NCBI RefSeq assembly: GCF_000143415.4
Contig: NW_003314297.1
Location: 1,155,430-1,219,429, forward strand
Length of the DNA: 64,000 bases
From: Selaginella moellendorffii
Lineage: Eukaryota > Plantae > Lycopodiophyta
Direction of reading: 5' to 3'
Shown: piece by piece, positions 3,844 through 62,522 of the stretch
Numbering within the stretch: the first letter of the stretch is position 1
How the letters are laid out: each line of letters begins with the position of its first letter
Translations under genes and position numbers: made by a program
The notes under the pieces: model-generated
What the model was told of the DNA's origin: nothing
The model's input: only the letters and a program-made list of their open reading frames with translations
Databases searched by the model: none

Positions 3844-5134
3844 ATGGATCCTGGGAGAGGTCCTCACGACTATCAAGGTTGGGGAGTTTCAAGAAGGATT
3901 GGATGGCATCACCATCACTTTCGGCCCCCAGTTCCAGTTCCTCCGTCTCCATTGCCATTCGCTCCAGCTCCAGCTCCATTCCCATCTCCTATTACTCCAA
4001 CACCATTCCCATCTCCAACTCCATCTCCAACTATTCCAACTCCATTCCCATCTCCAACTCCATCTCCAACTCCAACTCCAACTATATCACCAGCGTCAAC
4101 AAAAACAACAGCGCTTCTATCTTTGATTCCTTTTGTGGTGTTCGTAGGAGTGGTAGCACTAGTAGCGTTCGGGCTTTGGTGGGTCTTTGAGAGAAAAAGG
4201 AAAGATGATGGTGATGGAGATAGGGAAAAACATGAAACTCGAGTCGAGCTAGGTTTTATCAGCTGTCGCAACGAAGCGGAGCTCCAGCAAGCCGAGGATG
4301 GTTTACTAAGAGAAAAAGAGGGAGACTTTGCGATTGACGTTGGCGTGCAGGAATGTTCAGAAGCTCCAATACACCATGTAGATTCTATCCAAACTAGCAG
4401 CAAGGAGAGAGTTGGTGACATCAATAGTTGCCATGCACAAGAATCTTCAGAAACTATCCAAACTAGCAGCGAGGATAAAGCTTGCGAGATAGAAGAACTA
4501 GGTCATGCCAAGGAACAAGGTGGCGGCGGGAACAATAGGTAAACTTGATTTTATTTTTCTCCTTGATGTTATGCATTTGCATGATAGATGTCGGAAGAGC
4601 CAATTCGGGAGGTCTTTGGCCGCAGAGTATGTAGATGCTGCAATGGCTTGCATTCGTAACGATGGAACAGGGACGAATTCCTCGTTTACCGTCGTAAGGA
4701 TGAGGACCGCACTGATAAAACTCACCCGGGCCATGGAGATTCTGAAGGCGGAGAGCAGTGAGCACGAGGGCCTGTTTGAGGTCTTCAACTTGATGGGATT
4801 TGCATACCTGGAGCTCGAAAATATTCCAGTAGCCGCCTCGCACTTCGAGAGGGCAAAGGCGATCGCTGAGAAGAACTTTGGAATGGGGCATCCCAGCATC
4901 TTGGCCGCAGCTCTCAGCCTGGTAGCGGTATACTCGTCCATGAACAGGTAGGTATCTAATTTGGTTTTTCTTTGATTTTTATGTTTTTTTTCTGAAAATT
5001 TTAGATGGAGCCAAGCAATTAGATGCCAGGCCGAGGTTCTAGAGCACCTCCAGGCACAAAACGTGCATCCAGATGTTCTCAAGGAGCACAAGGCCAAGCT
5101 CCAAAGGCTACACGATGAAGAGCTTCAACAGTGA
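3844..5134 (+). CDS. Pro/Thr-rich N-terminus, single TM helix, acidic linker, TPR-like helical C-terminal domain (3 exons)
   Basis: ORF 3844-4538 has PSPTP repeats and TM LLSLIPFVVFVGVVALVAFGLWWVF followed by RKRK. Introns lie at about 4539-4587 and 4948-5004. TPR-like segment FNLMGFAYLELENIPVAASHFERAKAIAEKNFGMGHP. Stop TGA at 5132-5134. Confidence 0.7.
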
Positions 5135-44899: not shown

Positions 44900-47100
44900 G
44901 GTTGGTAGTGCAATAAGATGTTGCTAACACTTGCTTAAGCAATTTGAGTTTCTTTGTATTGTTGACTAGGATTTATTCAGATTGGTTAGCGTGATAGTTG
45001 GCATAATTAATTGTTTGTGGGTTTTATCACATTTATTGATTGTTGCTCGAGTTAGTTATGATAGATTAAGATGTTATTTACTTCAAATGATACATTCACA
45101 AGTATTGTGCTTATCGATTAATGATACTTTGTGTTCTTTAAGTTATCTTTGGTAAGTTGTTTGGCATACTGTCTACAATTTTCGATAGTTAAATTTTCTC
45201 ATTGAGTTTTTTCGATGATACACTGGCTATTGAATTTTGTTGAATGATGAATCCTATGTGTTCTAAACATGATGATCTTGGTGGTTTCTGTACTCTTATA
45301 CTCATTTATCAGATGATAACTTACTTGGAATACTTTTGTGTTCTAATTTAAGATTTCTTCATTGATAATTAAGTCTTTAAGATATCATTGTCTATGACTT
45401 TGATATTGTCCACTATTAATCTTTGAGTTTGGGCCAGTATAGGTAGACTGGCTTTAGCACTTCGTGTGCATGGTGAAATCTTTAATCATGGGGTAGCTAC
45501 TGTCGATTGGTCACATAACCCGCCTCTCTATCGATGTTCCTTATTCCGTTAAAAGGGCGTGACCATATAAACAACTTTAACTGCTTGTTTACAGTAGTTT
45601 ATCTAAACCTTACCGACAAGTTTGGTTTCTTTGCTCAGAAAGTTAGGGCCTCTGGCTTCTCTCTCTATGTCTTTATAGGTAGAGGTGTATCACACTTTTG
45701 TAAGCTGGGTGACACCTAGAGTAGCAAGGGTGGCTAAATTTATTAGACATTTCCTTGTCGGCGACGGCTGGAAGGTGTTTGAGCTAGTAGTGCATCTGCG
45801 TTAGACAAAAAGGTTGCCTCCTAACTTATTTAAGTTGGTGCATTTCTCACATAGTGTGATCACTATGAAATTTTTCTGGAGTTGTTTCTTTGGCAGTGGT
45901 CTAAACTCGAGTATACATCGATGAGGACCTTGATCTTCCCTAGGGGGGGAGAGTGTCGCAAGTGTGACTTCGGGTATCGAAAGTTACCTATCAGCTAGTC
46001 CTTATGAACACTCTTTCCTTACTGCCATGATGGCAAGAGGTCGGTATTGCTGGACCCTTTATTAGTCCCTCTTGTTCACGTGTTAGTAAACTGGACTTTG
46101 CATCTTTATTTGGCTAGACGAGCATAAGGAAGGAATTCCTAAGTGTCTATTTAGCCAAGCATAGCTTCTTAGTTTTCTTTTGCTCTATTTTGCACTGGTT
46201 TGACAAGAACCCTTACGTATTAAGATTAGTCCCTCAATATCGCTGAATGATAGCTTACCGTATCTGTTAAACACCCTCACTATCATGCCCTTTATGTTAG
46301 TCTCATTTCGGTCCCAAATACTATTTATGGAAAGTGTTCAGATTTACTCATTTGGCATATTTACGAAATGTAGAGATTGTCTTGAACACAATGATGTTTG
46401 TCCCGTGTCTAAATTCACAATCTAAAGACATTCCATATTTAATAAGTTTTGAGCTTGTCCCAGAGACTAACTCTTGATACTAAGGGAGGCTTGGGGTGAA
46501 AGCCCAAAGCATGTGTTCCTCAGGGGGGGAGGGTGTGGGGGGTTCCAAATGTATAATAGGGATAGTGGGTAGATTGGGCATAGCTGACCAACCTGAGGCA
46601 TAGTTTAACTCCCGCTTGCGTGCCTGTCCTTGTTTTGCATCCGGCTTGGGTCTAAGCCCAAGTTCCATTCCATGTTAGCTGGTGGAGTACCCATGTCCTT
46701 GCGTTAGGCCACTAGTATGTTGAAATAGCACTATACTCTATTTGGCTCTATTTTGCGTGTTGGTCCTAGCATTAGAATGCTGGTTGCTCTAAGACTGATC
46801 TAAGTTTCTCCGTGCTCTTATTCCTTGCTCCTTGGGCTGTACACTTAGGAGTTGTTCCGTGATCCAGTGCTATTACTCCTTGGCTCCATGCTTGGGAGTT
46901 TGGCACCATTTCTTCATTCAGTGGTCTAAGGCCCTGAAATTTGGGTTCCACACCACTGTCCTTTGAACATGTGGCATGTGATACATGGCATATAACACGT
47001 GGCACATGAAGGGTATAGGTTCTATTTCATGGTTATTCTATGGTATATCACCATAGGATAACCCCCCCCCCCCCCCCCCCCCTCCTTCTGTTGCTATTAA
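44900..47100. mobile_element. Decayed LTR-retrotransposon debris
   Basis: Two polypurine-tract-plus-TGT junctions (AGGGGGGGAGAG-TGT at 45942-45956; AGGGGGGGAGGG-TGT at 46522-46536). No long ORFs and CpG-poor. Confidence 0.5.
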
Positions 47101-47364: not shown

Positions 47365-49410
47365 CTAAATTGGTTCCATTAGAGTCCTCCCTCTTACTAT
47401 CCCACAGGAACTCACTAAACCCCATAGGTTTGGGAGATGATTGCTTTGGGCTTTCACCCTTGAATTCAACTCGGATTTAGACTCAGATTTGGACTTAGAC
47501 TCGGACTCAGTTTTGGACTTAGTCTTGATCTCAGTCTTGGACTCTTTAGACTCCATCTTGGACTCCATCTCAGACACCATCTCAGACTCCATATTAGTTT
47601 CGGAGTTGGACCTGGTCTCAAACTCCATCGTAACCTCCATCTTAGACTCTTTTTCGGACTCCATCTTAGACTTGGTTTTGACACTTCCATGTGTCACAAC
47701 ACTGATCCCTCTTGTATCCTTATCTAGAGATTTACTTATTAATCACTTTATGCTCGTTCCTCGAGCACTTTGTTGGGAGTTCCACTCCTACCTATCAACT
47801 TTCCGAGTCAGAGCTTTTAGTTCAAATGTGTTATGCTTGTTGAACTTCCACTTTAGCCATTATCATATAGCACCCTTTAGCCCCACATTGGGGCTTAGGG
47901 ATTTATGTCTTACACCATCTTGATCATCACAAGATTTGGTATCTATGAATAAAGCCTACAAGATACATTAATAGATCACTTTTTGCATTGATTGCAAGAA
48001 AAACTTGAGGAAAGTAACTCATCTCTTCTTCCTCATAGTCCATATTAACTAATTTGTCAACCCCTTCAGCTTCACCACCACCATCTTCCCTCATAACATT
48101 GACACAAAACCTTGTCTTATGCTTATTAGGATATTTTGAGGATTTATATCCTACCTTTCCACAATAGAAATAATAACCCATACTATCTATTCCACTAGAA
48201 GCAAGTTTTATAGATTGTTATTACTTGTATCTACTAGGAGGAGAAACAAAGCATATAGGACTAAAAGAAGATGGTAGTGGTGGCCAACCACCACCTTTAT
48301 TAATTATCACTTATAAGTCTCTAAAGTGGAATTTCCCTTCCCTCTATTTCTATTCACCTTCTTTATTCCTAAAGTCCAAGGTAGTAGTATACGATTGCTA
48401 ATACTATTCTATGAGTGAGTGAGTGAAGACAACTTGTTATACTACCTCTTTACACTCTAAATATATCTTTAACTTAAACTTCAAAATCTCATGGCAAGAA
48501 AATAAACCCAAACCTTCTAAGAAATAACTTTAAGCATGTTTGTCACTCATATTTACAATCATGATGAATTTATGAGCAAATGCATTAATATAGTGCATAA
48601 GGTCTCTATGTTGTTTTAACCACGTAGCTCTACATGAAGTCTCAAACCAAGATCATCCAGCAAATATTCCTTATAGATATAAGACTACATCTTAGTCCAA
48701 CTTCTAGTTTACCTTTTTTTAACACACATTTAGCACCACCAAGTTTTGGCATGATTGGTGAAAAAGGACTACACACACTTTCATATGATCATCCATATTT
48801 GCTGCTATGAAATTTTTTTTTATATTATAAACTCAGTCTTCCAAAACTTGATAGTCCCATATACCTCTAAAATTGAGTGGTTTCAAGGGTTTGAACTTTA
48901 AAAATCATGCAATTGAGGGCAATTGTAAAACCTCATCATCCTCAGAACTTGAAAAAGATTTTAGTTGTTTAGGTTTAGCTAATTTAGGTGCCTTAGCTTC
49001 TTTCTTCTTCTTCGTGTTTTCTTTTTTCAATTTGTAAACTTTATTTTGCAAATTCTCGATCTCAATGTCTTGAGCTATATGTTGTGTTGTCGCAACCTTG
49101 AGCTCTTTCTTTTTTGACTCCACCTTATCCTCTTCCATAGCATTTCTAGTAGGAGTTTCCTCCTCTTGATTCGCTCGTTTAGAGGTTTTAGTGTCATCAA
49201 TATAGTTCCATTTTACCATCTCACCAGCTATATACATGCCTTTAATAATAAATGAACATATATACAATGTTTTTACCAAATGGTGCAATCTAATTAAATC
49301 TATAAAAGTTGCTTTAGATCTACAAGAAAAGTCTTTATGAATGCAATTAGAGTTAGAAACTTTGATAAAATTTGGATAGGAATCATTGAGATAATTCCTC
49401 TAATACCAAA
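47365..49410 (-). mobile_element. Degenerate Ty3/gypsy-type 5' internal region (PBS, gag, zinc knuckle)
   Basis: PBS-like TGGTATTAGAG (49408-49398, tRNA-iMet type). Broken gag motifs (HAKTWW, LKQHRDLMHYINAF, YFLEGL) and decayed knuckle YFYCGKVGYKSSKYP. Many TAG/TGA stops. Confidence 0.7.
47468..47680. repeat. 12-bp minisatellite (gactccatctca-type; E-S-K/E-M on the minus strand)
   Basis: Periodic ggactc/agactc units. These explain the spurious ORFs 47365-47697 and 47441-47923. Confidence 0.75.
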
Positions 49411-50189
49411 TATAGTCTATATGAATTTGAAGCTAAGCTCTAAGTTTATTACACTCTAAAACAAGGGTCTAGTACATACTTAATATCCCCTATAAGCACG
49501 AACTCCTTATATCCAGCTCTTGGATGCAAAACAGTGTCTAGCATAATTTTGGCAATTGGTGACTTAAAATGAGGAGGAAAGTACCCTATCGACTAAAGTA
49601 GAATAAAGGTTGAGCATAGACTTAATTTGGATGCAAAATAATGAGTAAACATTTTGAGTAAATCTAAACAATTATCATAAATAGTATATGGAACAGAAAC
49701 AGGTAAAGTGAACACAATAAGCTATCATATAGCAATATTAAAGGACTAAACTCATTAGGTGAGGGTATTTGTCATTAACCAATGCAAGATACAATAAAAC
49801 AGGAATTCCTTACTATTAAATATGCTTAGTTAATAGCATGTAGAAATTCCATCTTTATGTTCATCTAATCTAAGTACACTCAAGGTGTCCAATTAACTCC
49901 ACTAGTACAAGATGGGTCGATAAAAAGATTCAACTATACTAAACTTTTGCCATTATGGCAGTAAAGAAAAAATATCCATAAGGATTGGCTAACAAATACC
50001 TTTCAATACCCAAAATTACATTCGTAACACTTGTTTATTTCAAGAGCAACATTACACTAATGGCATGTAAGGAAAAAAAAACTAGTTAATATGAAAATGA
50101 GAGAACTTACTTCTATTTATATTCCATTGGTTGGAAAAGGTTTGTTGGTACATGAGAGGGCCTAAAATTATCTATTGATTGAAATACAC

Positions 50190-51200
50190 AAACCTCATGA
50201 TGATTCTAATGTAGCTACCCAATCTGAAAGATCCATCAAATATGATGTGAACACATTGTAGACTTTGCTTATGTTATGCAAATTACCATCATCCTCCATT
50301 GCTTCAAAAATGTACTTATAATACCAGATAGCACATTCAAAAACTTCCCACTATAGATGCTCTATACATTGCTAAATGAGTGCAAAAAAAAATTAGATTT
50401 CATTTTGAAAACAACATTTCTCACCTAGTTTCAAGTAGAGATGCCACAAATGAATGGTCAGGCTACAACACCCCAAACCTGAATCACATTAGCCTCAACA
50501 GCATTGTGTTCATTAGCATGATCACTACAAATGCATTTTGGTCACCCAAAGTGCTTCATTGCTTTTATGTAAGTGTTAAAAATTGTATGGGCTTCTTTTA
50601 TCGTCACTAGCTTAAATACAACTATATAGTGTGTGGCATTATAGATAATGTCTGCACATAAAATCCATAGGATACAAACTTGCAATATGCTACAACAAAA
50701 AAAGCTTATACACATATGCTAAAAACAAAAGCAAAGAGTATAAGGCTTGGTAATATTGTCAACTTGTCATTGTATCCTGGAAAGCTGTTTGTTGAAGAGT
50801 GTAGCATTGTTCTGTATTGCACGAGCATCTCATATTTGCCATCAGCTGAAACAATACCCAGCTACTTAACAGAATTTAACAATACTCTAAGTTGTTCCAG
50901 ACTTATGCATTAGAATGTTAATTCAAATATGTTGAAGTACCTCACTAGAGGGAATTCTACAATATGCACCTCTCCATGTTGCATTAGCAAGACACATACT
51001 TGTGCGAAGCCGCCCATTCGTGCTGCTTCTTCTAGTTGCCGCTCCGAGAGCATGGGAGACTTGTATACTTTTACAATGTTAGTTGGGAAATTCCAAGTTC
51101 ATTGGAAATGGAGTATAGTGTCTTGGTCTTTAGAGTCTTAAGCTAGACCCAAAGGGCAAAAATACTTGGGCAACTGAAATCTACTTGTGCTAAAAATGCC
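50190..51200 (-). pseudogene. Spliced pseudogene of unknown family
   Basis: Exon-like pieces flanked by AG/GT: PTNIVKVYKSPMLSERQLEEAARMGGFAQVCVLL; LEQLRVLLNSVK*LGIVSADGKYEML; HL*WEVFECAIWYYKYIFE. The CAG>TAG-type stops suggest methylation decay. Confidence 0.4.
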
Positions 51201-51329
51201 ATGAACTGGAAAAACATACAAAGGAAAAAAATTATTCCAGCATTTGGATGACTATAAATTATGTATTATTGCATTAGGCTCATAATCAGAGTCTGAATAT
51301 AAGTTGGAGTCTAAGTCTGATTCACTTTT

Positions 51330-51735
51330 TCCTATTCATTTCTATCTTCTACACCTACAAGAATTTGCCAAGAAATGTATGCATAAAAAATAAGACTAAG
51401 GAATAGCTTACATATGTATCTTCTGTGTGTTTTGAGAAGTCCCTCTGATGATGTTGGGAACACGATAAAGGGACCAAAGGGATTAAGGTTGTCTTTGGTT
51501 GTCTTGCCTAGTCACTAGGCTGTCTTCCAGGTCCCTGGTCCCTAGTTGCTTCCTCCTATTCATTTTTATCTTTTACACCTACAAGAATTTGCTAAGAAAT
51601 GTACGCATAAAAAACAAGACTAAAGAATAGTTTACATATCATGTTTTAAGAAGTCCCTTTGATGGTGTTGGGATTAAACACAATAAAGGAACCAAGAGAT
51701 AAAGGTTGTCTTTGGTTGTCTTGCCTTGCCACCAG
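51330..51735. repeat. Two-copy ~185-bp direct duplication
   Basis: cctattcattt.tatctt.tacacctacaagaatttgc...aaggttgtctttggttgtcttgcct at about 51330-51510 and 51555-51727. Confidence 0.8.
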
Positions 51736-52442
51736 ATTGTCATCATTGCAACCAAGTTGTCACCAGATTAGGTTGTCCTTTATTATAAATTGCCTTACAA
51801 ATTACATGCCATACCCTAGTCCTCTAGAGTGTGGGAGTGCTAGTGTGGAATTCTAAAGTGAGGAGTGAGTGAGGATTATAGAGATTCTCTTCTACAATTC
51901 TTTAAAATGTTTTTAAAGGATTGCCTAGCATAGGCAAATTACTGGTCTACAAGAAAATAATTATTAGCTTAGATAGTTTGTAGTCATTCATTTATATTAT
52001 ATCTAGCTAGTATGATATTTACATAATAGTTGCTCTAGTCCTAATTATATAGCATCCAAAATATTTTTACAGTATTGTTACTCTTATTAATTTTTCTGTA
52101 CTTCTATTCTGATACATCTTAGACATAATTGCTACATATATTCCACCAATTGCACCTCGATCTGGTGCCCGCTGTCAAGCATGGCGAAAGGGATCGATCG
52201 AATCAAATGCGTGCTTTGCATAGGATGTTACACGTGTCACTTGTATCACTTTGCTTGACATGTTCCTTCCACTGTACCAGCACTGAAAGTCACGAGAAAC
52301 ATATGAGAAAAATGAAAGGATGAATCTATTTGATGATGATTTCCCAAGATCACAATTTTGTCCAACTTTGAGACATCTCATGGAATGAGCACAATTCCCC
52401 AGGCTATCTATCGTTTACCATTGAAGAGGACTAGTGAGAAAG

Positions 52443-53249
52443 TCAGGTGCATGATAAAGCCCTAAACTGATGTGTAAATTCGGTTTCCAAGAATCTCCCA
52501 ATGTCAATAAAGGCATCATCCAACTTTTGACCCCAAAAGTTGTCTTGCACATCTCCCCTAACTTGTGGCGCACTTAAAACCTCTTGAGGTTGCCCACAGA
52601 AGTTGTTTTGCACATCTCCACCAACTTGTGCCGCACAATCACCACCAAACTCTAGAGGTTGCACCCAGAAGTCGTTGTTTTGCACATCCCTGCAAACTTG
52701 TGTAGCAAAATCACCACCAAGCCCTGGAAGTTGCCCCCAGAAGTTATTTTGCAAATCTCCGCCAACTTGTGCTGCACAAACACCACCCCAGAAGTTGTTT
52801 TGCATACCTCCGCGGAACTCTTGATCCGGTTGCCACGGAGTTTGAGATGATTCCCCAGCGAATTCGCCCACAAAACCCTGCCCGGCTCTCGTCTCGTTCA
52901 TACTGGCTCCTCCATCGCTGCTGCTGCTCGATGTTTTGGCTTTCCGTTTGCTGGGCGATGTGGGCGATATTACCCTTATCTTGCCACTCTGCGTCCACTT
53001 TTTCTTGCACGGCCGTGCCCTACAAGCGAAACGCGGCTGGTCGCGCTTGTCGTTGTTGTAGTAATCAAATCGCGTGTCGTAAGCTTGGCAGTGTGGGCAC
53101 TGGTACAAGTTGTCCGGAAGGTCGTGAGGCTCCCACATGTTGTACAGCTTTTGCTCCCTCACTTGCTGGGCCGTGAGCTTGCAAGCCCTCTCATTTCTTA
53201 CGCACCACTTCTTCACCGCACCCTTACCTGAGCCCCTTTTCTTCGCCAT
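52443..53249 (-). CDS. Divergent Dof-like zinc-finger protein with C-terminal tandem repeats
   Basis: CPHCQAYDTRFDYYNNDKRDQPRFACRARPCKKKWTQSGKIRV aligns to the Dof consensus. Intronless 268-aa ORF. TATAAATA at 53290-53283. Confidence 0.85.
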   Translation of the reverse strand: MAKKRGSGKGAVKKWCVRNERACKLTAQQVREQKLYNMWEPHDLPDNLYQCPHCQAYDTRFDYYNNDKRDQPRFACRARPCKKKWTQSGKIRVISPTSPSKRKAKTSSSSSDGGASMNETRAGQGFVGEFAGESSQTPWQPDQEFRGGMQNNFWGGVCAAQVGGDLQNNFWGQLPGLGGDFATQVCRDVQNNDFWVQPLEFGGDCAAQVGGDVQNNFCGQPQEVLSAPQVRGDVQDNFWGQKLDDAFIDIGRFLETEFTHQFRALSCT

Positions 53250-54150
53250 ATGTCACTCGTTTAACCCTAAAGGGATGGAGCTTATTTATAGTTTGTAACC
53301 TTTTAGATAATGGTCAACACTTGTGCTAAAGTAAATGTTAATGATAAATAGACCTTTTAGATGCACTAAACTGATGGTTAACACTAAAAAATCTCGGATA
53401 CACGGTCATATTAAAAGCTATTTGTGTCGCTGGAAAAATGTTGAAGCTCTCTTTTGGGTGAGGTGTATCAATCAATCAACTCATTTGCATCAACCTACAA
53501 GTTGTGCAGAACCTGACCACTCAAAGCATGGGAGGATCACCACTCCTTTCTTTCTCAAATATTACCTCTTTCTATACAGGACAATCTTCTGTGAGCGTCA
53601 AAAAGAAACAAAACAAAACTCCTTTTGTTTCAATTTTTTTATCTTTTAAAATCTCCACACTTTTCACTATCAACTCCCAAGCCCAGATGAACCTCCAAAA
53701 GTCACAGGCCGAGAAGAATTCTCTGGATCTATTTTGTAGTGCTGCGAAAAAGCTTTGGCTTCCCTGTGAACAATTCAGTGAACCCAGCCTGTTACACTTC
53801 GCGTACAAGCAAGCGTCACAGCGAAAGACGAGCTAAAAAAGAGAGGGAAAAAAAAAAAGAAAAACAAAGAGAAACACAGAGTGTGGCGGTAAGATATTTG
53901 TGGTGGCCAAAGCGGGTCTAGCTAGGAAGCGATAGGCCTTTCGTCCTTGGCGAGACAATGAAATACTCAAACATCCACGCAGTTAAGTAGAACGGCCAAG
54001 CCAAGACAAGGCAAGAGTTTCGACAAACCTTATGTGTTGTGTGAGAGGGACAAGAGCTTCCTTCTCCAGCGTTGTACATATAACGCATTCCTTACTTCTC
54101 CTCCGCTACGTTTCAAGAGCCCTTTTGTTGTTTTGTTCGCTTGCTCGTCA

Positions 54151-54630
54151 TCATCCACCAGTGTTTGGCTTTGCAATCGCAAGCAGCTTCCTCGTCTCCT
54201 CCATCAGAGCTCGGCAGTGCTTGCCGGTCTCTTGGTGCTTCTCGTACGCCGTGAAGAAGCTCTCATTCTCTTTCTTGAGCTCGTTCCACACTGCAGGGAT
54301 CACAGAAAACTTTCTTTAAGTCGAGCGATACGACTACTGGAAACGAATTTAATTGAGCAACTACTAGTAAAAGACGAAATTTCTTTGCTTGCCTGTGAGT
54401 GTGACAACGGGCTTCACGTTGGAGTGCGTGGACAACGCGGCTACGCATTCGTCGCAGTTCATGTTGAGCAATAGACACTGCTCTATCAAACTTTGCACCT
54501 ACAGGAAGGAAGAGCCGAGGCAAATTACACGCATGGGGAGTCGCGGAATTCTTACTTGAAGAATGTACTCGGCTGACACTGGCTGTGAATCCGATGCAGC
54601 AGCACGCTCCTCCCTCCGCTCCGAGCTCAT
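54151..54630 (-). CDS. A_thal_3526 / TIGR01589 family plant protein (3 exons)
   Basis: MSSERR...SAEYILQ|VQSLIEQCLLLNMNCDECVAALSTHSNVKPVVTLT|VWNELKKENESFFTAYE. The second intron is GC-AG. The C-terminus is uncertain. Confidence 0.8.
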
Positions 54631-54906
54631 CTCGAACGATGAACTTGCAGCTAAAATTTATGGATCACACAAATACCATTTCCTGCATGTTTAAAAAAAA
54701 TCGCTAGCACATTTCTTCAGGCGACTAGAGAGGAGAAAAGAAACAAACGGAACCTCTTTCGACTGCCTCGTGTGGGTTACGGAAGACACCAAAGGAATAT
54801 ACCTCGTGTCAGCTGGAAAATCTCCAACGAATGCAGCTACAACCCTGTCAAGATCAAAGATTCTTACTTCCGATCGAAAAGCAAAACTTAACACCCAAAC
54901 CTTGCA

Positions 54907-57900
54907 TCACTTTCTCATGGCGGTGAAAAGTGGATTATTCGGCGGTTGTGCAGCACCCGGGAGAAATCCACCAGGCGGTTGTACAGAGCCAAATCCAAAG
55001 CCACCAAAGCTTCCGCCGTGGCCAAGCGCTTGAAATCCACCACCTGTCACGCCCATTTAGTTGATTGCTTCCAAGAAAACAAACAATAAAAACTTTTACC
55101 TGTTGCTGCACCGGAGTGCACCACCACCTGGTCAGCTGTTCAGGCCGGCTGCATTTTCCTTGAGCTCTCCGGGAACAGGTTTTACGACCGCGCCAGAAGG
55201 TGGTGCGTTCTCCAAGCCCGCCGCGCCTGCTAGTGGATTTGGTCAGGCTCCTTCGAGCGGCTTCGGACAGCCTGCTGGGAGCGCGCTGGGTAGTGCACTG
55301 GGTGCATTCGGACAGACGAGACAAGTTGGATTTGGTGGTCCAGTGTCAGGTGCAGCTGGTTTCGCAAATGCTTCGCCGGGCGGTGGTTTTGCTCCTGCGG
55401 CAACCGGCAGTGGTTTTGCCAGTGCTACGTCGGCTGCTGGTTTTGCGGCCGCGGCATCAGGTGGTGGCTTTGCAGTTCTCCGAACGAGGTGGCCTGCGGG
55501 CTCTGCGTTACGCCAAAAGGATTCGCCGCTGGCGCAGAAGGCAAGGCCGAGCCCAGGCCGAGATTCCCAAAGCCCGAGAATGCAGTCGAGGGGGCCTCCT
55601 CGTCCACGTCATCTTCCTCTTCCTCTGGTGGCGGCCGCACGGCTTGAGTAGTCTGCTGCTGCTGCTGAGATTGAAGCAAAGCTGGAAAAGGCGAAGGAAC
55701 CAGCTGGCTAGTAGATTCTACCGGCGAGCTGCTGTAACCGCTGGAAGGAACTTTTGTTGTCAGTGTGGACGTAGCAGCTGAGGACGATGCAAACAATAAT
55801 GCAGTAGCGGGAGACGCTGATGGCGGGAAGCTGAAAGCTGCTGGCTTCACTTCTGATGTAGTACGTGGAGCTGCAGGTAGAAGAGCAGCCGAGGTCGACG
55901 AGCTTACAAGCGACTGGGAGGAACCGCTGGAGACGCTACATGTCGCTGCTATATGTGACTCGGCTCCAACTGCTGGAATAATGATGGAGACTAATCTTGT
56001 AGAAACACTGCACGTGGGAGTTGAGGTGATAGGTGTAGCTTTCAGATCTGAAGATAAAAGATGTGGTGACTGGTGTACCCTTCAGCTCCGAAGATGTGGA
56101 AGTTGCTGGTGTAGCCTGCACTGTGGAAGCTGTAGTTTCCACGTCCGAAGGTCTGGAAGACGCAACAGCCGGTGCAGCCTTCAACGTCGACGATGAAGTG
56201 AACGGTGTAGCCTTCAACTCCAACGATGGTAGCCACGTTGATGATGAGTGGTGATGCTTGACGTGACTGTGGCCGGGGCGGTAACGAAACGAATACCATT
56301 GCCAGAAGCTCTTGAGATGTCAGGAACCTTGAGTGCTGAAGCATTAGAGGAAGGCGGCTGCGATCTTAAACCCCAGTCACCAAGAGGAGGCGGAGAATTC
56401 TGTGAAACTATATCCGTCCTAGAAGAAAACGAAGGCCTCGTCGTACCCAAAGATGTCGCTGCAGGTGCTAATACGAGAGTCGTCACTTCTGTAACACTTG
56501 GCTGCTTCAAAGTTGACTGCGGCTGGAAACTACTGGAGGTTGATTCAAGCAGTTTAGCCTTCCGGTTATTGACCACATGTGTGTGCCCAACCATTTGATC
56601 GTGGTTTTCGTTGCTCCAATACCCTGTGAAGTGAACGGACCAAAAGCATAGAAAACGCAAGAAACGCAACAATACTTACGCTATCTAAGGAATCTCTTCG
56701 CCTTCTCGTGCTTTCCACCGGCGCGAAGTCATCACACAAGATAGACTTGGATGGCGTAGAGAAAACACTCTCGGCTTTAGTCTGCGGTGGCTTGGTCTGC
56801 AATAAATACGATTGCATTTTCCGGGGCCTTAGGGAAGTAACACTTGACGATATATCGATTCCATCAAGTCCGCGAGATGTACAGATAGCTTATCAGCTGC
56901 TTCCATCTGAGAGTTGACTGTGCTGTAAAGACTTTGAATAGATTGGAAGTCTCTGTGCCACATACAAAAAATTAGATCAAAATTACTTGCAAAAACCATT
57001 TATACCCAGCAGTAGACCGTTGTTTCGAAGACATATTTTGACGTCGACTTATTTCAAGTGTATGAAGATGAGACTCGAGATCAGAAATTTGTCTTTTCAA
57101 TCTCTACATATACCAAGTCAGATGCATAGGGACGAGTAGTATAAACCTCATCTGCATTGATAACATGCTTTCGCTTGATGTCCATTTCCGGGTGAAGCTT
57201 GCGGTGAACCCAGAGGTCCTGGTACCGCCTAATTATCCATGCGTCAACTAAATTTCCAGCTCAAACTGTTAGTCGTAATAAAGGACAGTAATACCATCAA
57301 GGCTTTGATCCCGAAGCTCCTCAACAAACTGACAGTTCTCTTGCAGTTTTGCTGGATTTTAAAGAATGTAACCATCACACCGAACATTTCCTGGAAGATT
57401 ACCTTAAAACTACGGCATCGCGCTGAAACGGCTACAATTTCGTTTTCCAGCTTGTCCACCCCAGACCTTGTTAAACCGGATCCAAGAGAATCTTTCTCGA
57501 TAATATGCATAAATCCATCAATATCATCAACGATTTTCTTCACCTGCAGAAACAAACTTTGAAGTATAAAAGCCAAAAGTTCAAGTACCTTGTCCGTTTC
57601 TGCCAGAAAGCCTGCTTCCATTTCAGAAACTCCTTGTGATCGTGAAGAACGTTTCTCAACCTCGTCTTCCCTTTTAAACGAAAATGGCTGTCTCTCTACA
57701 GGAATTTGTGATGCTCCGTCTTGAGGTAAAGGCGGCTTTTTCTCCTTTTGATTAAAATCCACCTGAGCTTTATGCAACTGCTCGTTCACAGTTTTTGATG
57801 CAGAAAACACCCTTGGCTGAATGCCATTCATGGTGGTAACCTTGGGCTCCACACGTACAGGAACTGGCGTTACAGTCTTTTTTTCGGCATCCACCTAAAA

Positions 57901-59630
57901 CATAAATCGACCTTACGCATTCATTCCCAAAAATAGGCCACAAACCTTAGGATCGGGAGACTTCGATGCCCACTCCTCAAGACTAGATGGAATCCTTATT
58001 AGGCCAGTGCTATACCAACTCTCACCATCCAACCTGAAAAGTAAACTATAAAAAATGACAAATAAACAATAATCATTCGAAATCACCTCAGGACCGAGTA
58101 TAGCAGAAGTCGTGAGTCAAGTGACGTGCATAACATTACCGGACTTGGAGGAAGAAGTTTTTCTGGATTTCTTGGATCAGGCTGTTTTAACAATGATGTT
58201 CGATCTATCGCCAGCCCAGTTAAGGCATTGTCACTCGAAGAATCTACAAAGATATACAGTATAAGAACTGTTTACTTACAAAACATGTCTACTTACCAAA
58301 CATGGAGATGTCAGCTCTCCACAAATCATCTGACAAAGCAAACACCTTCGGACCGCCAGCCTAGAAGGCCAACATGTGCGTCGATGGACCTTCTACAAGT
58401 TGTCAACACGATTTTCCTAGAAAAAGACTTTAAAACACGATGCCGAGAATATAAATCATACCATGGTTCTAGGTTCTATACAAGCATATACGGACTGTTC
58501 ATGGGTGGAATAATACTAGCTTCAATCGCAGGAAATCTTCGAGTAACCGCTAAAGCAGAACACTCCGTGCTTGCCTGTAAAACGCCAACACAAACGAGTC
58601 AGTATTCTTACCTCGCTAATTGAAATAAGAACCTCATCTAGTTGTTGCCTACCAGACGCTGAAAGCACAAGCAGCGGACAGGTAATTTCTTCATCGTCCT
58701 CCGACTGGACATAGCTAATTACAATGCTTTGTGGCGAAATCCAGCGTAAAGCATCAACTAGAACAAGCTTAAAATCATTAACAGCATGCGAGTTTTCAAT
58801 AAAGACACGTACCATGAGTTTCCAGTCCTTCCTCGCACCCAGGAAATTCTACTCGTGGATTTATGATAAAACTCTTGGCAAAATCAGACGACGCAATCGT
58901 TAGCTTCATGCTTGTTGCATACATGATCTGCTTGCCAAACTGACTCCAACAAGCTGAAAAAGGAATAAGTGAAATGCATTAACAAGAACGATGATAAATC
59001 ATAAATCTACGCACCAGCAGAAACATTTTCCTTCATAAATGTAGGCTCTTCTCCGATTTTTCCGACGAGAAGCTTTCCTTTGTTTTTGTCTTGGTCTAAA
59101 CTACACCACTGAAAATCCTTGATCAAAGCATCGTCGCCGATGTCGCGGATCTCGAACCGTCTAGTGTCGGTCTAGAAAGAAAATCAAAGAAAAATCTACA
59201 ATAAATTGACAACGTAGACGAACCTTGAGTGCCAGAGAAGGGACTCGGTAGAATCGAACAGCGAAGCCGGCACACACAGCAAGCGTGAGCTCGTCCTTTG
59301 AAAGCTCCACAATCGAGACTTTCTCCAGTTCCACGCTCGCTAAGCATTTCTCACTCGCAGAAGCAGGCTTGGGTCCGCTCGAGAGCTCCAAAACGTCTGC
59401 CGTCACGACTCCAAAACCTACAGTGGAAATATTTCGATTTCGCCAGGAGAATGATGGATCGTACCTGCTGGCGTGGCGAAGAACGTCAGGCCGAACCGAT
59501 TGGACACTGAAAGCACCCGCGCTGGATGATAATCAGAACTAGCCTTCGCGCCAGGCGACAGGAGTGATACGCCTCCACCGATCGCCTTGAACGCGATATC
59601 TACATTCTCTTCGGGCGCCTTCTCCACCAT
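54907..59630 (-). pseudogene. NUP214: Nucleoporin NUP214 (LNO1-like), disrupted by several frameshifts, a stop and an internal inversion
   Basis: N-terminal beta-propeller (LSVSNRFGLTFFA, VDALRW), coiled coil (RYQDLW..RKLHPEM), S/T-rich linker, DEEAP..FGNLGLG, FG region and terminal LFTAMRK*. The lesions are listed in findings. Confidence 0.85.
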
Positions 59631-60055
59631 AAACCCTAACCCGGAAAAAACAAACTATTATATAAGAACAACGTTTTCTTACATTTCTAAATGGGAATAA
59701 TCACACCGGCATGGTTCAAGCCTTCTCTAGGGACATAACTAATAGCACGGCTTGGGGGTGCTCTCACAAGAGTTTTGTTCCAATGGTAAGACATAGTGCA
59801 TATGCCACCACTGGGCATTTGCTGCTAGCCTTACGCTTTAAGCCATAAGAATTCTCTCGGGCATTAAACCTTCGATACCTTCCTGTAAAACCTTAACTCA
59901 GACGCGACTTCTAAGACAAAGCATTGGCATAGAGATAAAAAATCCCTCTCGCTCCCTCCAGATTGTTACTGTGAGACAAGGTCAAGCAAGTGTGTTTTGA
60001 AAGCAAGACCTCATCCCCATTCCCATTTAGTGTACTACTCTGTGTCCTTCCATTC

Positions 60056-61230
60056 ATGGATCTTCTCTCCCACCCAATTTTGAGTGCCTTAGTGCTGCTT
60101 GCTGCAGCTCTCTGGTTCTCTTCTACTAGAAGAAGAAATCCTCCAGGAAATCTCCCTCCAGGACCACTCAACTTGCCAGTCATTGCAAGCTCGGCTCGCT
60201 CCCTCACATCTCACTTCACAAACTCTCCAAGAGATATGGCGATGTGATGCTCTTGAAGCTCGGCAGCGTGCCCACAGTCATAATCAGCTCCGAGAGAGCT
60301 GCCAGAGATATTTTCAAGCGCCATGGCCTCGACTTTGCCTCCAAAGCTCCACCGATGTGCGGGAAATACTTTGGCAACGACTACAATGGTCTAGTTTTCA
60401 GCCAATACACTCCGGAAGTGAAGCTCTACAGGAAGCTCATCAACACTCACTTGCTCTCGCCGACCAAGCTCAAAGCTTACGATGGAATCCGTTGCGAAGA
60501 GCAGCGCCGTCTCGCTCGATCTGTCAGTGACGAGTGAGGGAATCGGGTCCTCCTGCGGCAAAAGATCCACGACATGAACATGAACGTGATAACTTACATG
60601 CTATTCGGGAAGCGCTTCTGTGGACACTACAAGAACACTGCGAATGTCTACGAGTTCGCGCAAGCGATAGTGGAGACGGTTAGGCTGGCCGGGATCTTCA
60701 ATGTGAGCGATTACATCCTTGGAATTCGCTGGCTGGACGTCCAAGGCTTGGAGAAGAAGTACAAGCAGCTCATGAACCGGGTAAACAGGCACCCCTTGTC
60801 GATCTTACGAGGCCAGCAAGGGGATCCTCCAGTTTTCACCAGCGAGGAGCCCATGGCTTTCATCGATGTGCTCATCTCCATGAGAGAGAAGCTCTCGGAC
60901 ACCACCAAAATTCAACTTTTGCTCGTAAGTTTCTCTTGGTCAAAGTTGTTCTTCTTTAACGCTGGATGAATCCCATAGGATATGTTGCTGGGTGCTGTGG
61001 ATACTTCGGCTCTCTCACTGGAATGGGCTATGGCTGAGCTTCTTTGGCATTTAGTTGAATTCACAAGAGCTTAGAGCCAAATTAATATAATTGTCGGCAA
61101 AAAAAACCTTGTGAACGAGTTGGACATCACAAAGCTTCCATATGTCAAGGCCATAGCCAAGGAAACAGTGAGGCTCCAGTCAGTGGCTCCACTAGCTCTT
61201 CCCAAGATCGTCCAGCAAAGTTGAACATGG
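60056..61230 (+). pseudogene. Cytochrome P450 (CYP71-clan-like) pseudogene
   Basis: TM anchor, LPPGP, LKLGSVP, I-helix GAVDTS and K-helix KETVR. Frameshift at about 60190, stops at 60535 and about 61071, and no heme-binding FxxGxRxC motif. Confidence 0.9.
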
Positions 61231-61419
61231 ATCAAACATTTGGACTGGTTTGTCAAAAGAGTCAACCTCTTGTGGATATCCCAATCCTCAGGCTGGATTC
61301 TCACGTTTACTAGAAACATTGGTCCATACCAGCTTGCTTCTTCCATAAAGTTTGCTTCCTCTCCAGGAAAACTATCATAATTTCGTGTGTGACGCTCGAG
61401 GAACTATCATAATTCAACC

Positions 61420-61700
61420 ATTGTTTTTCTACCCTTTCAATGATACAACTGATCAATATAACAATGTATCAATTCGCATGGACCATGTGGAAGAGGAATA
61501 ATCTATACAATGGTTCCAAACCAACTGATCTTGGAGGCTTAGAAATGGTGGAACTGGAAATAGAAAGATATTACATGAAAGTGATCACCTCCCGAAGAGG
61601 CGATCAAAGAAACTCGTGGAAGGAGTTCCCGCCCCACCCAGAACGGGCGAGCCGGGTGTTAGCCCGGCGAGGGCGTTCTGGAGGGAAGCCCGTGCCCTAA
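61420..61700 (+). mobile_element. Possible LINE ORF2 3'-end remnant
   Basis: AWTMWKRNNLY resembles the L1-type C-terminal W.LWK.RN motif. A GC-rich hairpin follows. Confidence 0.35.
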
Positions 61701-61829
61701 AGACCGTTAACAGATATGTTATTCGAGGCAACCGGGTTGTCCAGAACCTTGCAGCTGGCAGCCGGTTCTGAAGAACCTGGCAGTTGTCAGCCACGTTCTT
61801 GCGGATCGATCCGACGGCTGCCAGTGGCT

Positions 61830-62522
61830 GGATCGAGTTAACAAGCGAGCCACAGCCGCTTGAGTTTGATTCCAAGCACTCAACGTGAGCATACCTTCCG
61901 AGTTTATCTTTGGAGCGTGGCTCTTTCGATGTGTCGTTGCCACAAACTTTGCATCACTTGTCCACCCATCCAGTTTCAACGTACACACCCTTCACTGATT
62001 GATCACCCAACATCTTGGCATAGAAAAATGAGGACGAAAAATAAAAGAGCCGAGGAGAAAAAAACACTCAAAAGAAGAAAGAGACTTGTAAATACCATCG
62101 ATTGGTTCTTTGACGAAATCCTTGTAGGAGCCACCGATCTTCTGTTTTAGAGCTGCGTACTGCAAAAGTCAAGAAGAGAGAGATGAGAAATTTGGACAAG
62201 TTGGATGTTTTTTCTCAAAGACGTGGTACTTGCTCTCGGGACATTTTCTCGCCTGACTTTGTAGCCTGATGAGCCTCGTCGATCAAATCAGCGTCCCTCT
62301 CCGACCTTGCCTGAGAGAAATCCAGCGCGTCGGTGATGCTAGTCAGAAATGATGTCTTCTCCTGCTTCTGTTCACTCCCCTAGCCGGGAGGAGTTTCATC
62401 CTTTCTATCCTGTGCCAGAAGAACTATACTGACTTTTTTGTGGGGGCTGTGATTAACTGCTGCTGCTTGATGGATCTGCCAAGAAAACTCGCCTTTGTTG
62501 CTGCAACCGAAGCTGCCGCCAT
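61830..62522 (-). pseudogene. Pseudogene of a conserved plastid-targeted protein with a CxxC...HxxC motif
   Basis: Transit-like MAAASVAATKASFLG; SFLTSITDALDFSQARS...SREQ|YAALKQKIGGSYKDF...|YVETGWVDK*CKVC...DKLGRYAHVECLE. Stops at 62380-62382 and 61954-61956, and a frameshift near 62435. Confidence 0.75.

Follow-up and report, generated by a model that had tools for sequence, protein, structure and literature searches.

A precise 360-bp inversion of FG-repeat coding sequence in a probable NUP214-like pseudogene of Selaginella moellendorffii

The window analyzed here, a 64,000-nucleotide stretch of the Selaginella moellendorffii genome, is 100% identical to scaffold GL377601.1 of assembly GCA_000143415.2. 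Positions 52492–59654 form a segmentally duplicated block of ~7.2 kb containing three genes: a NUP214-like gene, a member of the A_thal_3526 family, and a Dof gene. Homology to an intact locus ends on both sides of this block. The NUP214-like copy occupies 54907–59630 on the minus strand and consists of 17 exons, from a start ATG at 59630–59628 to a TGA at 54907–54909 that is conserved with the intact locus, and 16 of its 16 introns still have GT..AG boundaries. Exon 16 opens with a Ser/Thr-rich linker and the first FG repeats (55474–56623, minus strand), a part that contains a frame-shifted stretch; it continues with a segment of FG-repeat coding sequence lying on the plus strand (55114–55473) and closes with 14 nt (GAAT-G; 55100–55113, minus strand) that the alignment leaves in place beyond the inversion. 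The sequence-only reading of this DNA had predicted an intron next to the FG segment, and this was confirmed: intron 16 (55044–55099, minus strand; 56 nt, GT..AG) is spliced in transcriptome-like contigs, with loose contig ends at 55047 and 55098 (runs X4 and X20). Exon 17 (54907–55043, minus strand) encodes the last FG repeats and the terminal ...LFTAMRK.

Family membership was examined through homologous proteins. A Riccia orthologue (P0010) scored 46.7 bits for the NUP159/NUP214 β-propeller family (PF16755), above the 29.6 cut-off, and the N-termini of this protein and of a Diphasiastrum orthologue (P0007) align to 59600–58086 on the minus strand. The match of the window's own model to PF16755 was only "faint," P0007–P0009 themselves had no Pfam match, and Pfam scans of P0001, P0003, and P0004–P0009 returned nothing significant. 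With the paralogous protein P0003 as the query, phmmer retrieved plant proteins of 1550–1900 aa aligned over residues 65–935. When the FG segment and the Dof ORF served as protein queries in a length-limited search, P0001 and P0002 were the only matches; the long NUP214 models fall outside that length range. A central coiled-coil followed by a C-terminal FG tail gives the window copy an order collinear with its orthologues, the flipped segment excepted. A literature search found no paper naming both Selaginella and NUP214.

A second, intact NUP214-like locus is present in the same assembly on scaffolds GL377568.1 and GL377590.1 (hereafter L002 and L003). These copies are collinear at 96–99% identity over ~16 kb, spanning GDSL lipase, 763-aa, and CRS1 genes, and are two haplotypes of one locus. 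L003 encodes a full-length protein of 1395 aa (P0147), and the name given by NCBI to the intact paralogue is "nuclear pore complex protein NUP214-like." Both haplotypes are collinear with the window over 52492–59654, apart from the reversed 55114–55473; homology to the window is confined to that interval. Beyond the 7.2-kb block the window and the intact locus have unrelated flanks, and those of L002 and L003 match each other at 96–99%; the window copy is therefore best described as a segmental duplicate, a paralogue and not an allele of the intact locus. A variant of ~95% identity among sequencing contigs had first been taken for the window locus's second haplotype, but the flank-sharing L002/L003 pair ruled this out. 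No second allele of this window-type locus was recovered from the assembly; the contigs alone point to its existence.

The FG segment is the only part of the NUP214-like gene on the plus strand. In blastn comparisons, 55114–55473 (360 bp, 120 codons) matches L002 7669–8031 and L003 14399–14761 in the forward direction at 93.4% identity, and both flanks match in reverse. A tblastn search gave the same picture: residues 755–875 of P0003 match 55115–55474 on the plus strand (91.7%, E = 2e-61), and residues 332–756 and 876–935 match the minus strand on either side. The opposite-strand placement is far beyond chance. The plus strand reads through 122 codons without a stop at 55115–55480 (SAPPPGQLFR...GGGFAVL), and the minus-strand ORF 55850..55425 terminates ...ATSFGELQSHHLMPRPQNQQPT at a TAG (55425–55427), 22 codons after the minus-strand reading enters the segment. 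Both features had been recognized from the sequence alone, as had a clean inversion, although its extent had been given as 368 bp (55113–55480). Alignment to both intact haplotypes places the breakpoints at 55113|55114 and 55473|55474, with an ambiguity of 1 nt and no bases gained or lost, and once flipped in silico, the window aligns across the two junctions and neither breakpoint shows a gap. Flipping 55113–55480 does restore the reading frame, as had been proposed, but only through a small cggag/ctccg repeat at the ends. The proposed comparison with another haplotype or a paralogue was informative: the FG segment is in normal orientation on both haplotypes of the intact locus. The FG region of P0007 matches the window's plus strand and its residues 13–801 the minus strand, and in L002 the FG regions of the Diphasiastrum and Riccia orthologues lie on the gene strand, whereas in the window they map to the opposite one. 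Since a single 561-aa ORF continues across the corresponding region in L002, where the orthologous FG regions lie on the gene strand, the inverted state appears to be the derived one.

The inversion is not the only lesion. Exon 6 contains an in-frame TAG (58476–58478, minus strand) where both intact haplotypes have CAG (Gln303). Relative to the intact locus, exon 7 carries a frame-breaking 8-nt deletion (58330–58345, minus strand), and contigs from DNA run X1 show this window state, with no insertion after 58337, alongside other-locus contigs that have the insertion. Exon 15 has lost 4 nt at 56850–56860 (minus strand), a frame-breaking deletion evident from the ORF list and the intact-locus comparison; the reading changes to ADLMESIYRQVLLP with a stop at 56829. 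The upstream part of exon 16 has changes of about −10 nt near 56246, +7 nt near 56060, and +5 nt near 56583, with a main-frame stop at 56214. No intact reading frame for a NUP214 protein was found in the window copy (TAG at codon 303, −8, −4, shifted exon 16, inversion), and besides the inversion at least five disabling lesions are present in the reference allele. Among window-type alleles some may carry less damage than the reference, as indels are possibly polymorphic there (a contig with +10 nt over 56100–56351, and a TG insertion after 56054). In metazoans, the FG tail of Nup214 binds CRM1/XPO1, and loss of this CRM1-binding domain had been attributed to the inversion. That proposal did not hold: because the nonsense codon and the frame-breaking indels of exons 7, 15, and 16 all lie upstream, the inversion is not what removes the domain, and an intact NUP214-like gene exists elsewhere.

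The sequence-only reading had also noted a short inverted repeat of Pro-Pro-Pro and Gly-Gly-Gly codons near the two ends, and this is present as perfect 10-nt arms: CCACCACCTG at 55121–55130 (Pro codons in the coding sense) and CAGGTGGTGG at 55458–55467 (Gly codons). A hairpin or template switch, its suggested mechanism, was not demonstrated. The arms do not flank the segment with switch points in them; they lie inside it, 7 nt from the left breakpoint and 6 nt from the right. Crossing-over within the repeat was considered and ruled out, since the 6–7 nt between arms and breakpoints are also inverted. In the outside flanks, no complementarity or inverted homology was found beyond the breakpoints, and junction microhomology is ≤1 nt. 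A terminal repeat of 10 nt, as in the window, has P < 0.2% under the null, but the uninverted paralogue's repeat is only 8 nt, and a length of ≥8 occurs in 8–10% of random placements within that exon; the enrichment is weak. The inversion probably arose once, in the germ line, as a two-ended event without gain or loss of bases. Two double-strand breaks with blunt rejoining could have produced it, as could a replication error, and the 10-nt repeat inside the breakpoints may have drawn the two sites together.

An error of the 2011 Sanger assembly or its cloning, with the segment flipped only there, was weighed against Logan contigs, which are not raw reads; the RNA or DNA nature of the runs is presumed, and inferences of strand and depth from them are unsafe. 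A short inverted repeat at the ends can confuse assemblers, and the other orientation does occur at the intact locus, but contigs independent of the assembly bridge the inverted junctions on both sides, well past the 10-nt repeat. In DNA run X1, a 180-nt contig covers the left junction with 0 differences (54968–55147), and a 441-nt contig covers the right (55442–55883). For a 61-mer centered on the right junction, 3 of 3 sampled 31-mers were present in 14 transcriptome-like runs from 5 studies. At 10 nt, the repeat is also far below the k of 31 with which Logan contigs were presumably built. Because contigs from a separate DNA run bridge both junctions and 14 runs contain the right one, an assembly artefact does not account for the inversion; that reading is already largely refuted, and what probability it retains is very small. 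The same contigs bear on a reversible or somatic switch, in which both orientations at the window locus would toggle the FG domain. X1 and the RNA-like runs each contain inverted and non-inverted junction sequences, but every non-inverted contig seen, from DNA and RNA-like runs, bears the SNP/indel signature of the other locus and not that of the window. The 300-nt contigs that depart from the window at 55473 have 10 differences from it, the same as L002 over 55297–55473. A variant contig over 55118–55326 has a CCG insertion and 8 SNPs, all in L002, plus one (55250) absent from L002, and among the 12 loose letters preceding 55114 is the GGACT of L002, where the window has GAACT. SNPs of window type near the junctions include A at 55476 and T at 55117. 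Window-type contigs (not raw reads) have inverted junctions only, so both orientations at the window locus were not found among contigs, the non-inverted ones being of L002/L003 type. With the gene already broken upstream and the repeat arms not coinciding with the breakpoints, as they would at recombination sites, the switch was not borne out and is scarcely credible.

The plus-strand ORF across the inverted segment could instead be a new protein-coding gene, given that a 196-aa ORF is present and that NCBI annotates a spliced product of 311 aa ("glycine, alanine and asparagine-rich protein-like," P0001; 54917–56254, plus strand) covering the segment. Outside the FG segment, however, P0001 is an antisense reading of NUP214-like exon 16, its homologues are NUP214 FG regions only, it belongs to no Pfam family, and the contigs carry no strand information. 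We read P0001 as an annotation artefact of the inversion, and a genuine new gene is very improbable. Another public model, on the minus strand, misleadingly fuses the pseudogene to its neighbor. A proposal with more to commend it is that the inversion was the primary inactivating event in a recently functional second NUP214, with the frameshifts later or allele-specific. The dN/dS of the window copy against the intact gene is ~0.25 (0.28 in the inverted segment), with a dS of ~0.16 for the duplication, start and stop codons and all GT..AG introns are kept, and in-frame indels (n = 19) outnumber frame-breaking ones; the low dN/dS and the excess of in-frame indels indicate that selection acted on the copy during most of its history and that its decay is recent. 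Moreover, an X1 variant contig of 98.2% identity shares the inverted junction, and some indels look polymorphic. Against this, the further disabling lesions of the reference allele must be accounted for, the inverted segment has had no long neutral period of its own (dS 0.13), other exons being alike in this, and the order of events can't be read from one sequence. We regard this proposal as unlikely, though not negligibly so. The interpretation we favor, and consider highly probable, is that the locus holds a duplicated and transcribed NUP214-like pseudogene in which a once-inverted 360-bp FG segment is one neutral lesion among several, with the functional gene elsewhere. The upstream nonsense codon and frameshifts lead to this view of the inversion as neutral and without a role in nuclear-pore regulation.

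The main value of these results is a correction: since an intact gene is present elsewhere in the genome, the apparent loss of the CRM1-binding tail does not characterize Selaginella nuclear pores. Two misleading public gene models, plus-strand P0001 and the minus-strand fusion, are also flagged. In addition, a base-perfect exonic inversion of 360 bp, with breakpoints resolved to 1 nt against two uninverted haplotypes, provides a data point on the origin of mid-sized inversions. A more speculative consequence concerns the transcript. Pseudogene-derived antisense RNAs and endo-siRNAs are known from mouse oocytes and rice, and the transcript of the window copy, which runs through the inverted segment, would similarly contain a 360-nt stretch antisense to the intact-gene mRNA at 93% identity, with a longest perfect run of 62 nt (55118–55179). 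Such RNA could conceivably pair in trans with the functional NUP214-like mRNA and supply an siRNA pathway, adjusting NUP214 dosage. If true, the inversion would have converted a decaying duplicate into a natural antisense regulator of the gene it came from, but we consider this improbable.

Compared with known systems, the inversion falls among ordinary pseudogene lesions and does not represent a new kind of system. The window copy resembles the FG nucleoporins NUP214/Nup159 in its putative N-terminal β-propeller region, central coiled-coil, and C-terminal FG-rich tail, but unlike them it cannot encode the NUP214 protein, given the stop at codon 303, the frameshifts, and the flipped part of the FG tail. 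As in other duplicated (non-processed) pseudogenes, introns are kept, a nonsense codon, frameshifts, and a rearrangement are present, transcription continues, and an intact paralogue persists; it differs from them in its low dN/dS and recent decay and in having a precise intra-exon inversion, a lesion rarer than indels. Human-chimpanzee microinversions of 17–33 nt are flanked by short inverted repeats (PMC8755829), and spacers between inverted repeats can be inverted by template switching (PMC5453318, PMC8604942). Like these, the window inversion is exact: no bases were lost or gained, and a short inverted repeat lies near both ends. It is, however, ~10 times longer than the microinversions, and its arms lie inside the segment, 6–7 nt from the breakpoints, where those of the known cases are flanking.

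The plus strand at 55115–55480 translates as 122 FG-rich codons without a stop (SAPPPGQLFR...GGGFAVL), and the minus-strand ORF beside the inverted segment ends in ...ATSFGELQSHHLMPRPQNQQPT at a TAG (55425–55427). A 56-nt minus-strand intron with GT..AG ends (55044–55099) precedes the final exon (GGFQALG...LFTAMRK, with its stop at 54907), and a perfect 10-nt inverted repeat lies near the segment ends (CCACCACCTG, 55121–55130, and CAGGTGGTGG, 55458–55467). The sequence-only reading had described this flipped FG segment and its surroundings accurately. It was also right in proposing an inversion, but placed it at 55113–55480; comparison with both haplotypes of an intact locus (L002 and L003) located the breakpoints at 55113|55114 and 55473|55474. 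In coding orientation, the intact locus has ...TTCGGAGGACT|GAGCGCACCACCACCTGG... at one of these points and ...GGTGGTGGCTTTGC|CGGTGCAGCAACAG at the other. The window flanks are those of the intact locus and the 360 bases between them are its reverse complement, with no base lost or gained; since the first base of the segment is G and its last is C, the breakpoints can be placed only to within 1 nt. In silico flipping of 55114–55473, a check the earlier reading had proposed for its own interval, restored ...FGELSAPPPGQ...GGGFAGAATG, followed by the intron, and the flipped window aligned with L002 across both junctions. The wider interval also restores the reading, only because of a small cggag/ctccg repeat.

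The intact locus was reached from the neighboring Dof gene. L002, on GL377568.1, contains NUP214-like, A_thal_3526-family, and Dof genes in the same order as the window. In blastn comparisons with L002, 52829–55114 and 55460–59654 aligned in reverse orientation and 55114–55473 in forward orientation (93.4%). Over the whole region, L002 is a single 561-aa ORF, part of P0003 ("nuclear pore complex protein NUP214-like", 935 aa), whose N terminus is cut off by scaffold gaps. The 90% cluster of P0003 also includes P0147 (XP_024535358.1, 1395 aa), encoded on a third scaffold, GL377590.1 (L003). L003 and L002 are collinear at 96–99%, including flanking GDSL-lipase, 763-aa, and CRS1 genes, and are therefore two haplotypes of one locus; the suggested comparison with another haplotype or paralog thus yielded a paralogous locus, uninverted in both haplotypes. 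Window homology with this locus is limited to 52492–59654 and the flanks are unrelated, so the window copy is a segmental duplicate of ~7.2 kb and not an allele. Orthologues from an exhaustive phmmer search included proteins from Diphasiastrum (P0007, 1555 aa) and Riccia (P0010, 1909 aa; PF16755 passed at 46.7 bits). Their residues 13–801 match the window minus strand, and their FG region is on the plus strand in the window and on the gene strand in L002. Judged from these alignments, the inverted orientation is the derived state.

Other differences lie in and around the duplicate. Homology stops ~25 nt before the start ATG (59630–59654), and the upstream region differs from that of the intact locus, yet the copy is present in transcriptome-like contigs. 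Cytochrome P450 (PF00067) fragments (60099–60969, plus strand) lie directly past the block end and have no counterpart on that side of the intact locus. The Dof zinc-finger ORF of the duplicated block (52443–53249, minus strand, 268 aa) is intact, shares just 59% identity with the Dof protein of the intact locus (P0002), contains internal tandem repeats (..GGD.QNNFWGQ..), and has diverged much faster than the adjacent NUP214-like copy. A dispersed repeat (79% identical) occurs at 46636–47061, in AT-rich sequence to the left of this block, and at 4605–5034 of L003, beside a hAT transposase gene.

To assess the window gene, the exon structure of P0147 (17 exons, with introns of 44–60 nt) was derived on L003 and projected onto the window. 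All 16 introns retain GT..AG, as the copy does its start ATG (59630–59628) and TGA stop (54907–54909). Relative to the intact locus, the minus strand contains a nonsense change at codon 303 (CAG to TAG, 58478–58476), a frame-breaking loss of 8 nt from exon 7 (near 58338), a loss of 4 nt from exon 15 (near 56856) that leads to ADLMESIYRQVLLP and a stop at 56829, and a frame-breaking 5-nt insertion near 56583. A stretch of exon 16 is shifted (approximately −10 nt near 56246, +7 nt near 56060); homologous residues 466–509 are encoded in a different frame there, while the main frame runs into a stop at 56214. All these breaks are upstream of the inversion; the copy in the reference is therefore a pseudogene, and loss of the FG tail, attributed earlier to the inversion, is not due to it. 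The dS between window and intact copies is 0.12–0.17, dN/dS is 0.25 across structured exons and reaches 0.28 within the inverted segment, and indels that keep the frame (19) are far more numerous than those that break it; from these values the decay looks recent. An early place for the inversion among the lesions is conceivable but unlikely.

Read evidence came from Logan contigs of one DNA run (X1) and three transcriptome-like runs (X3, X4, and X20); introns in read joints were short (43–57 nt), in keeping with Selaginella moellendorffii. The window state was found at the exon 7 deletion in X1 contigs and over 56100–56351 in one X3 contig; an X4 contig over the latter interval has 10 nt more than the reference, and X1, X3, and X20 contigs have a TG insertion after 56054. 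These indels, with 8 SNPs in an X1 contig (55442–55883), suggest that the window-type contigs (55442–56524) represent several pseudogene-locus alleles with differing lesion sets.

The same contigs bear on whether the inversion is an assembly artefact or, as the sequence-only reading thought conceivable, a reversible or somatic switch. In X1, a 180-nt contig identical to 54968–55147 continues inward for 17 nt past the repeat arm and thus bridges the left junction in inverted form. The right junction is bridged likewise by a 441-nt contig (55442–55883), a 98.2% variant of window type with 8 SNPs, which is not L002-like because it is without L002's 93-nt insertion at 55700. All three words sampled from the 61-mer centered on the right inverted junction were present in each of 14 transcriptome-like runs, which come from five studies, ruling out an assembly artefact; the RNA label of these runs is an automated guess, and transcription of the pseudogene through this junction is suggested. 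Another X1 contig enters at 55114 after GTTCGGAGGACT, the uninverted junction, and spells GGACT as in L002 and L003, where the window has GAACT. In X3, X4, and X20, 300-nt contigs over 55297–55473 show 10 differences, the same count as L002 versus the window there (a match by difference count only, positions being known for L002), and depart from the window for the remaining 123 nt, as spliced intact-locus mRNA would. A variant contig over 55118–55326 differs by nine SNPs and an inserted CCG; L002 has this insertion and eight of the SNPs but not the ninth (55250 C>G), and the differences listed for the contig do not include the change that L002 has at 55261. No contig of the four runs joined window-type SNPs to the uninverted junction. 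Both orientations are thus present in the organism, at two separate loci, and the switch is not upheld.

A protein search with the plus-strand ORF returned one public protein, P0001 (54917–56254, plus strand; 311 aa, "glycine, alanine and asparagine-rich protein-like", Selaginella moellendorffii). The contig encoding it is 100% identical to 48917–62254, which assigns the window to scaffold GL377601.1 of assembly GCA_000143415.2. P0001 consists of the inverted FG segment and of exon 16 of the NUP214-like gene read in antisense, and is very likely an annotation artefact. A public 1089-aa minus-strand model (54364–59630) fuses the pseudogene with the downstream A_thal_3526 (PF09713) gene; the two genes are separate at the intact locus (L002 5112–8276 and 8583–9106). 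A pseudogene transcript would hold 360 nt antisense to functional NUP214-like mRNA, but a role for it in trans, as antisense RNA or as a source of siRNA, hypothesized from this complementarity, is highly improbable.

The inversion event was two-ended and exact, with junction microhomology of at most 1 nt. The 10-nt length that the repeat has in the window would seldom arise under a placement null (P < 0.2%), but in the uninverted paralogue it measures just 8 nt (P 8–10%); the repeat may plausibly have been involved. The earlier reading correctly noted it near the segment ends and proposed a hairpin or template switch. Spacer inversion by template switching between inverted repeats has been described (PMC8604942, PMC5453318), but with switch points in the arms it does not fit as such, nor does plain crossing-over inside them: the arms lie 7 and 6 nt inward of the breakpoints, and the intervening bases were flipped too. 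No inverted homology was found between the outer flanks. Blunt rejoining of two breaks, which may have lain at the base of a short-lived stem made by the 10-nt repeat, is the tentatively preferred model; replication-based models are also tenable.

Collectively, the window contains a small, precisely resolved inversion in an apparently transcribed, recently decayed segmental duplicate of a NUP214-like gene. The inversion is not a regulatory switch, and it does not amount to a loss of NUP214 function. As a pseudogene lesion or a mid-sized inversion, it is of an already known kind. Known inverted-repeat-flanked microinversions span 17–33 nt with the repeats outside the segment (PMC8755829), whereas the window inversion spans 360 bases and has its repeat inside.
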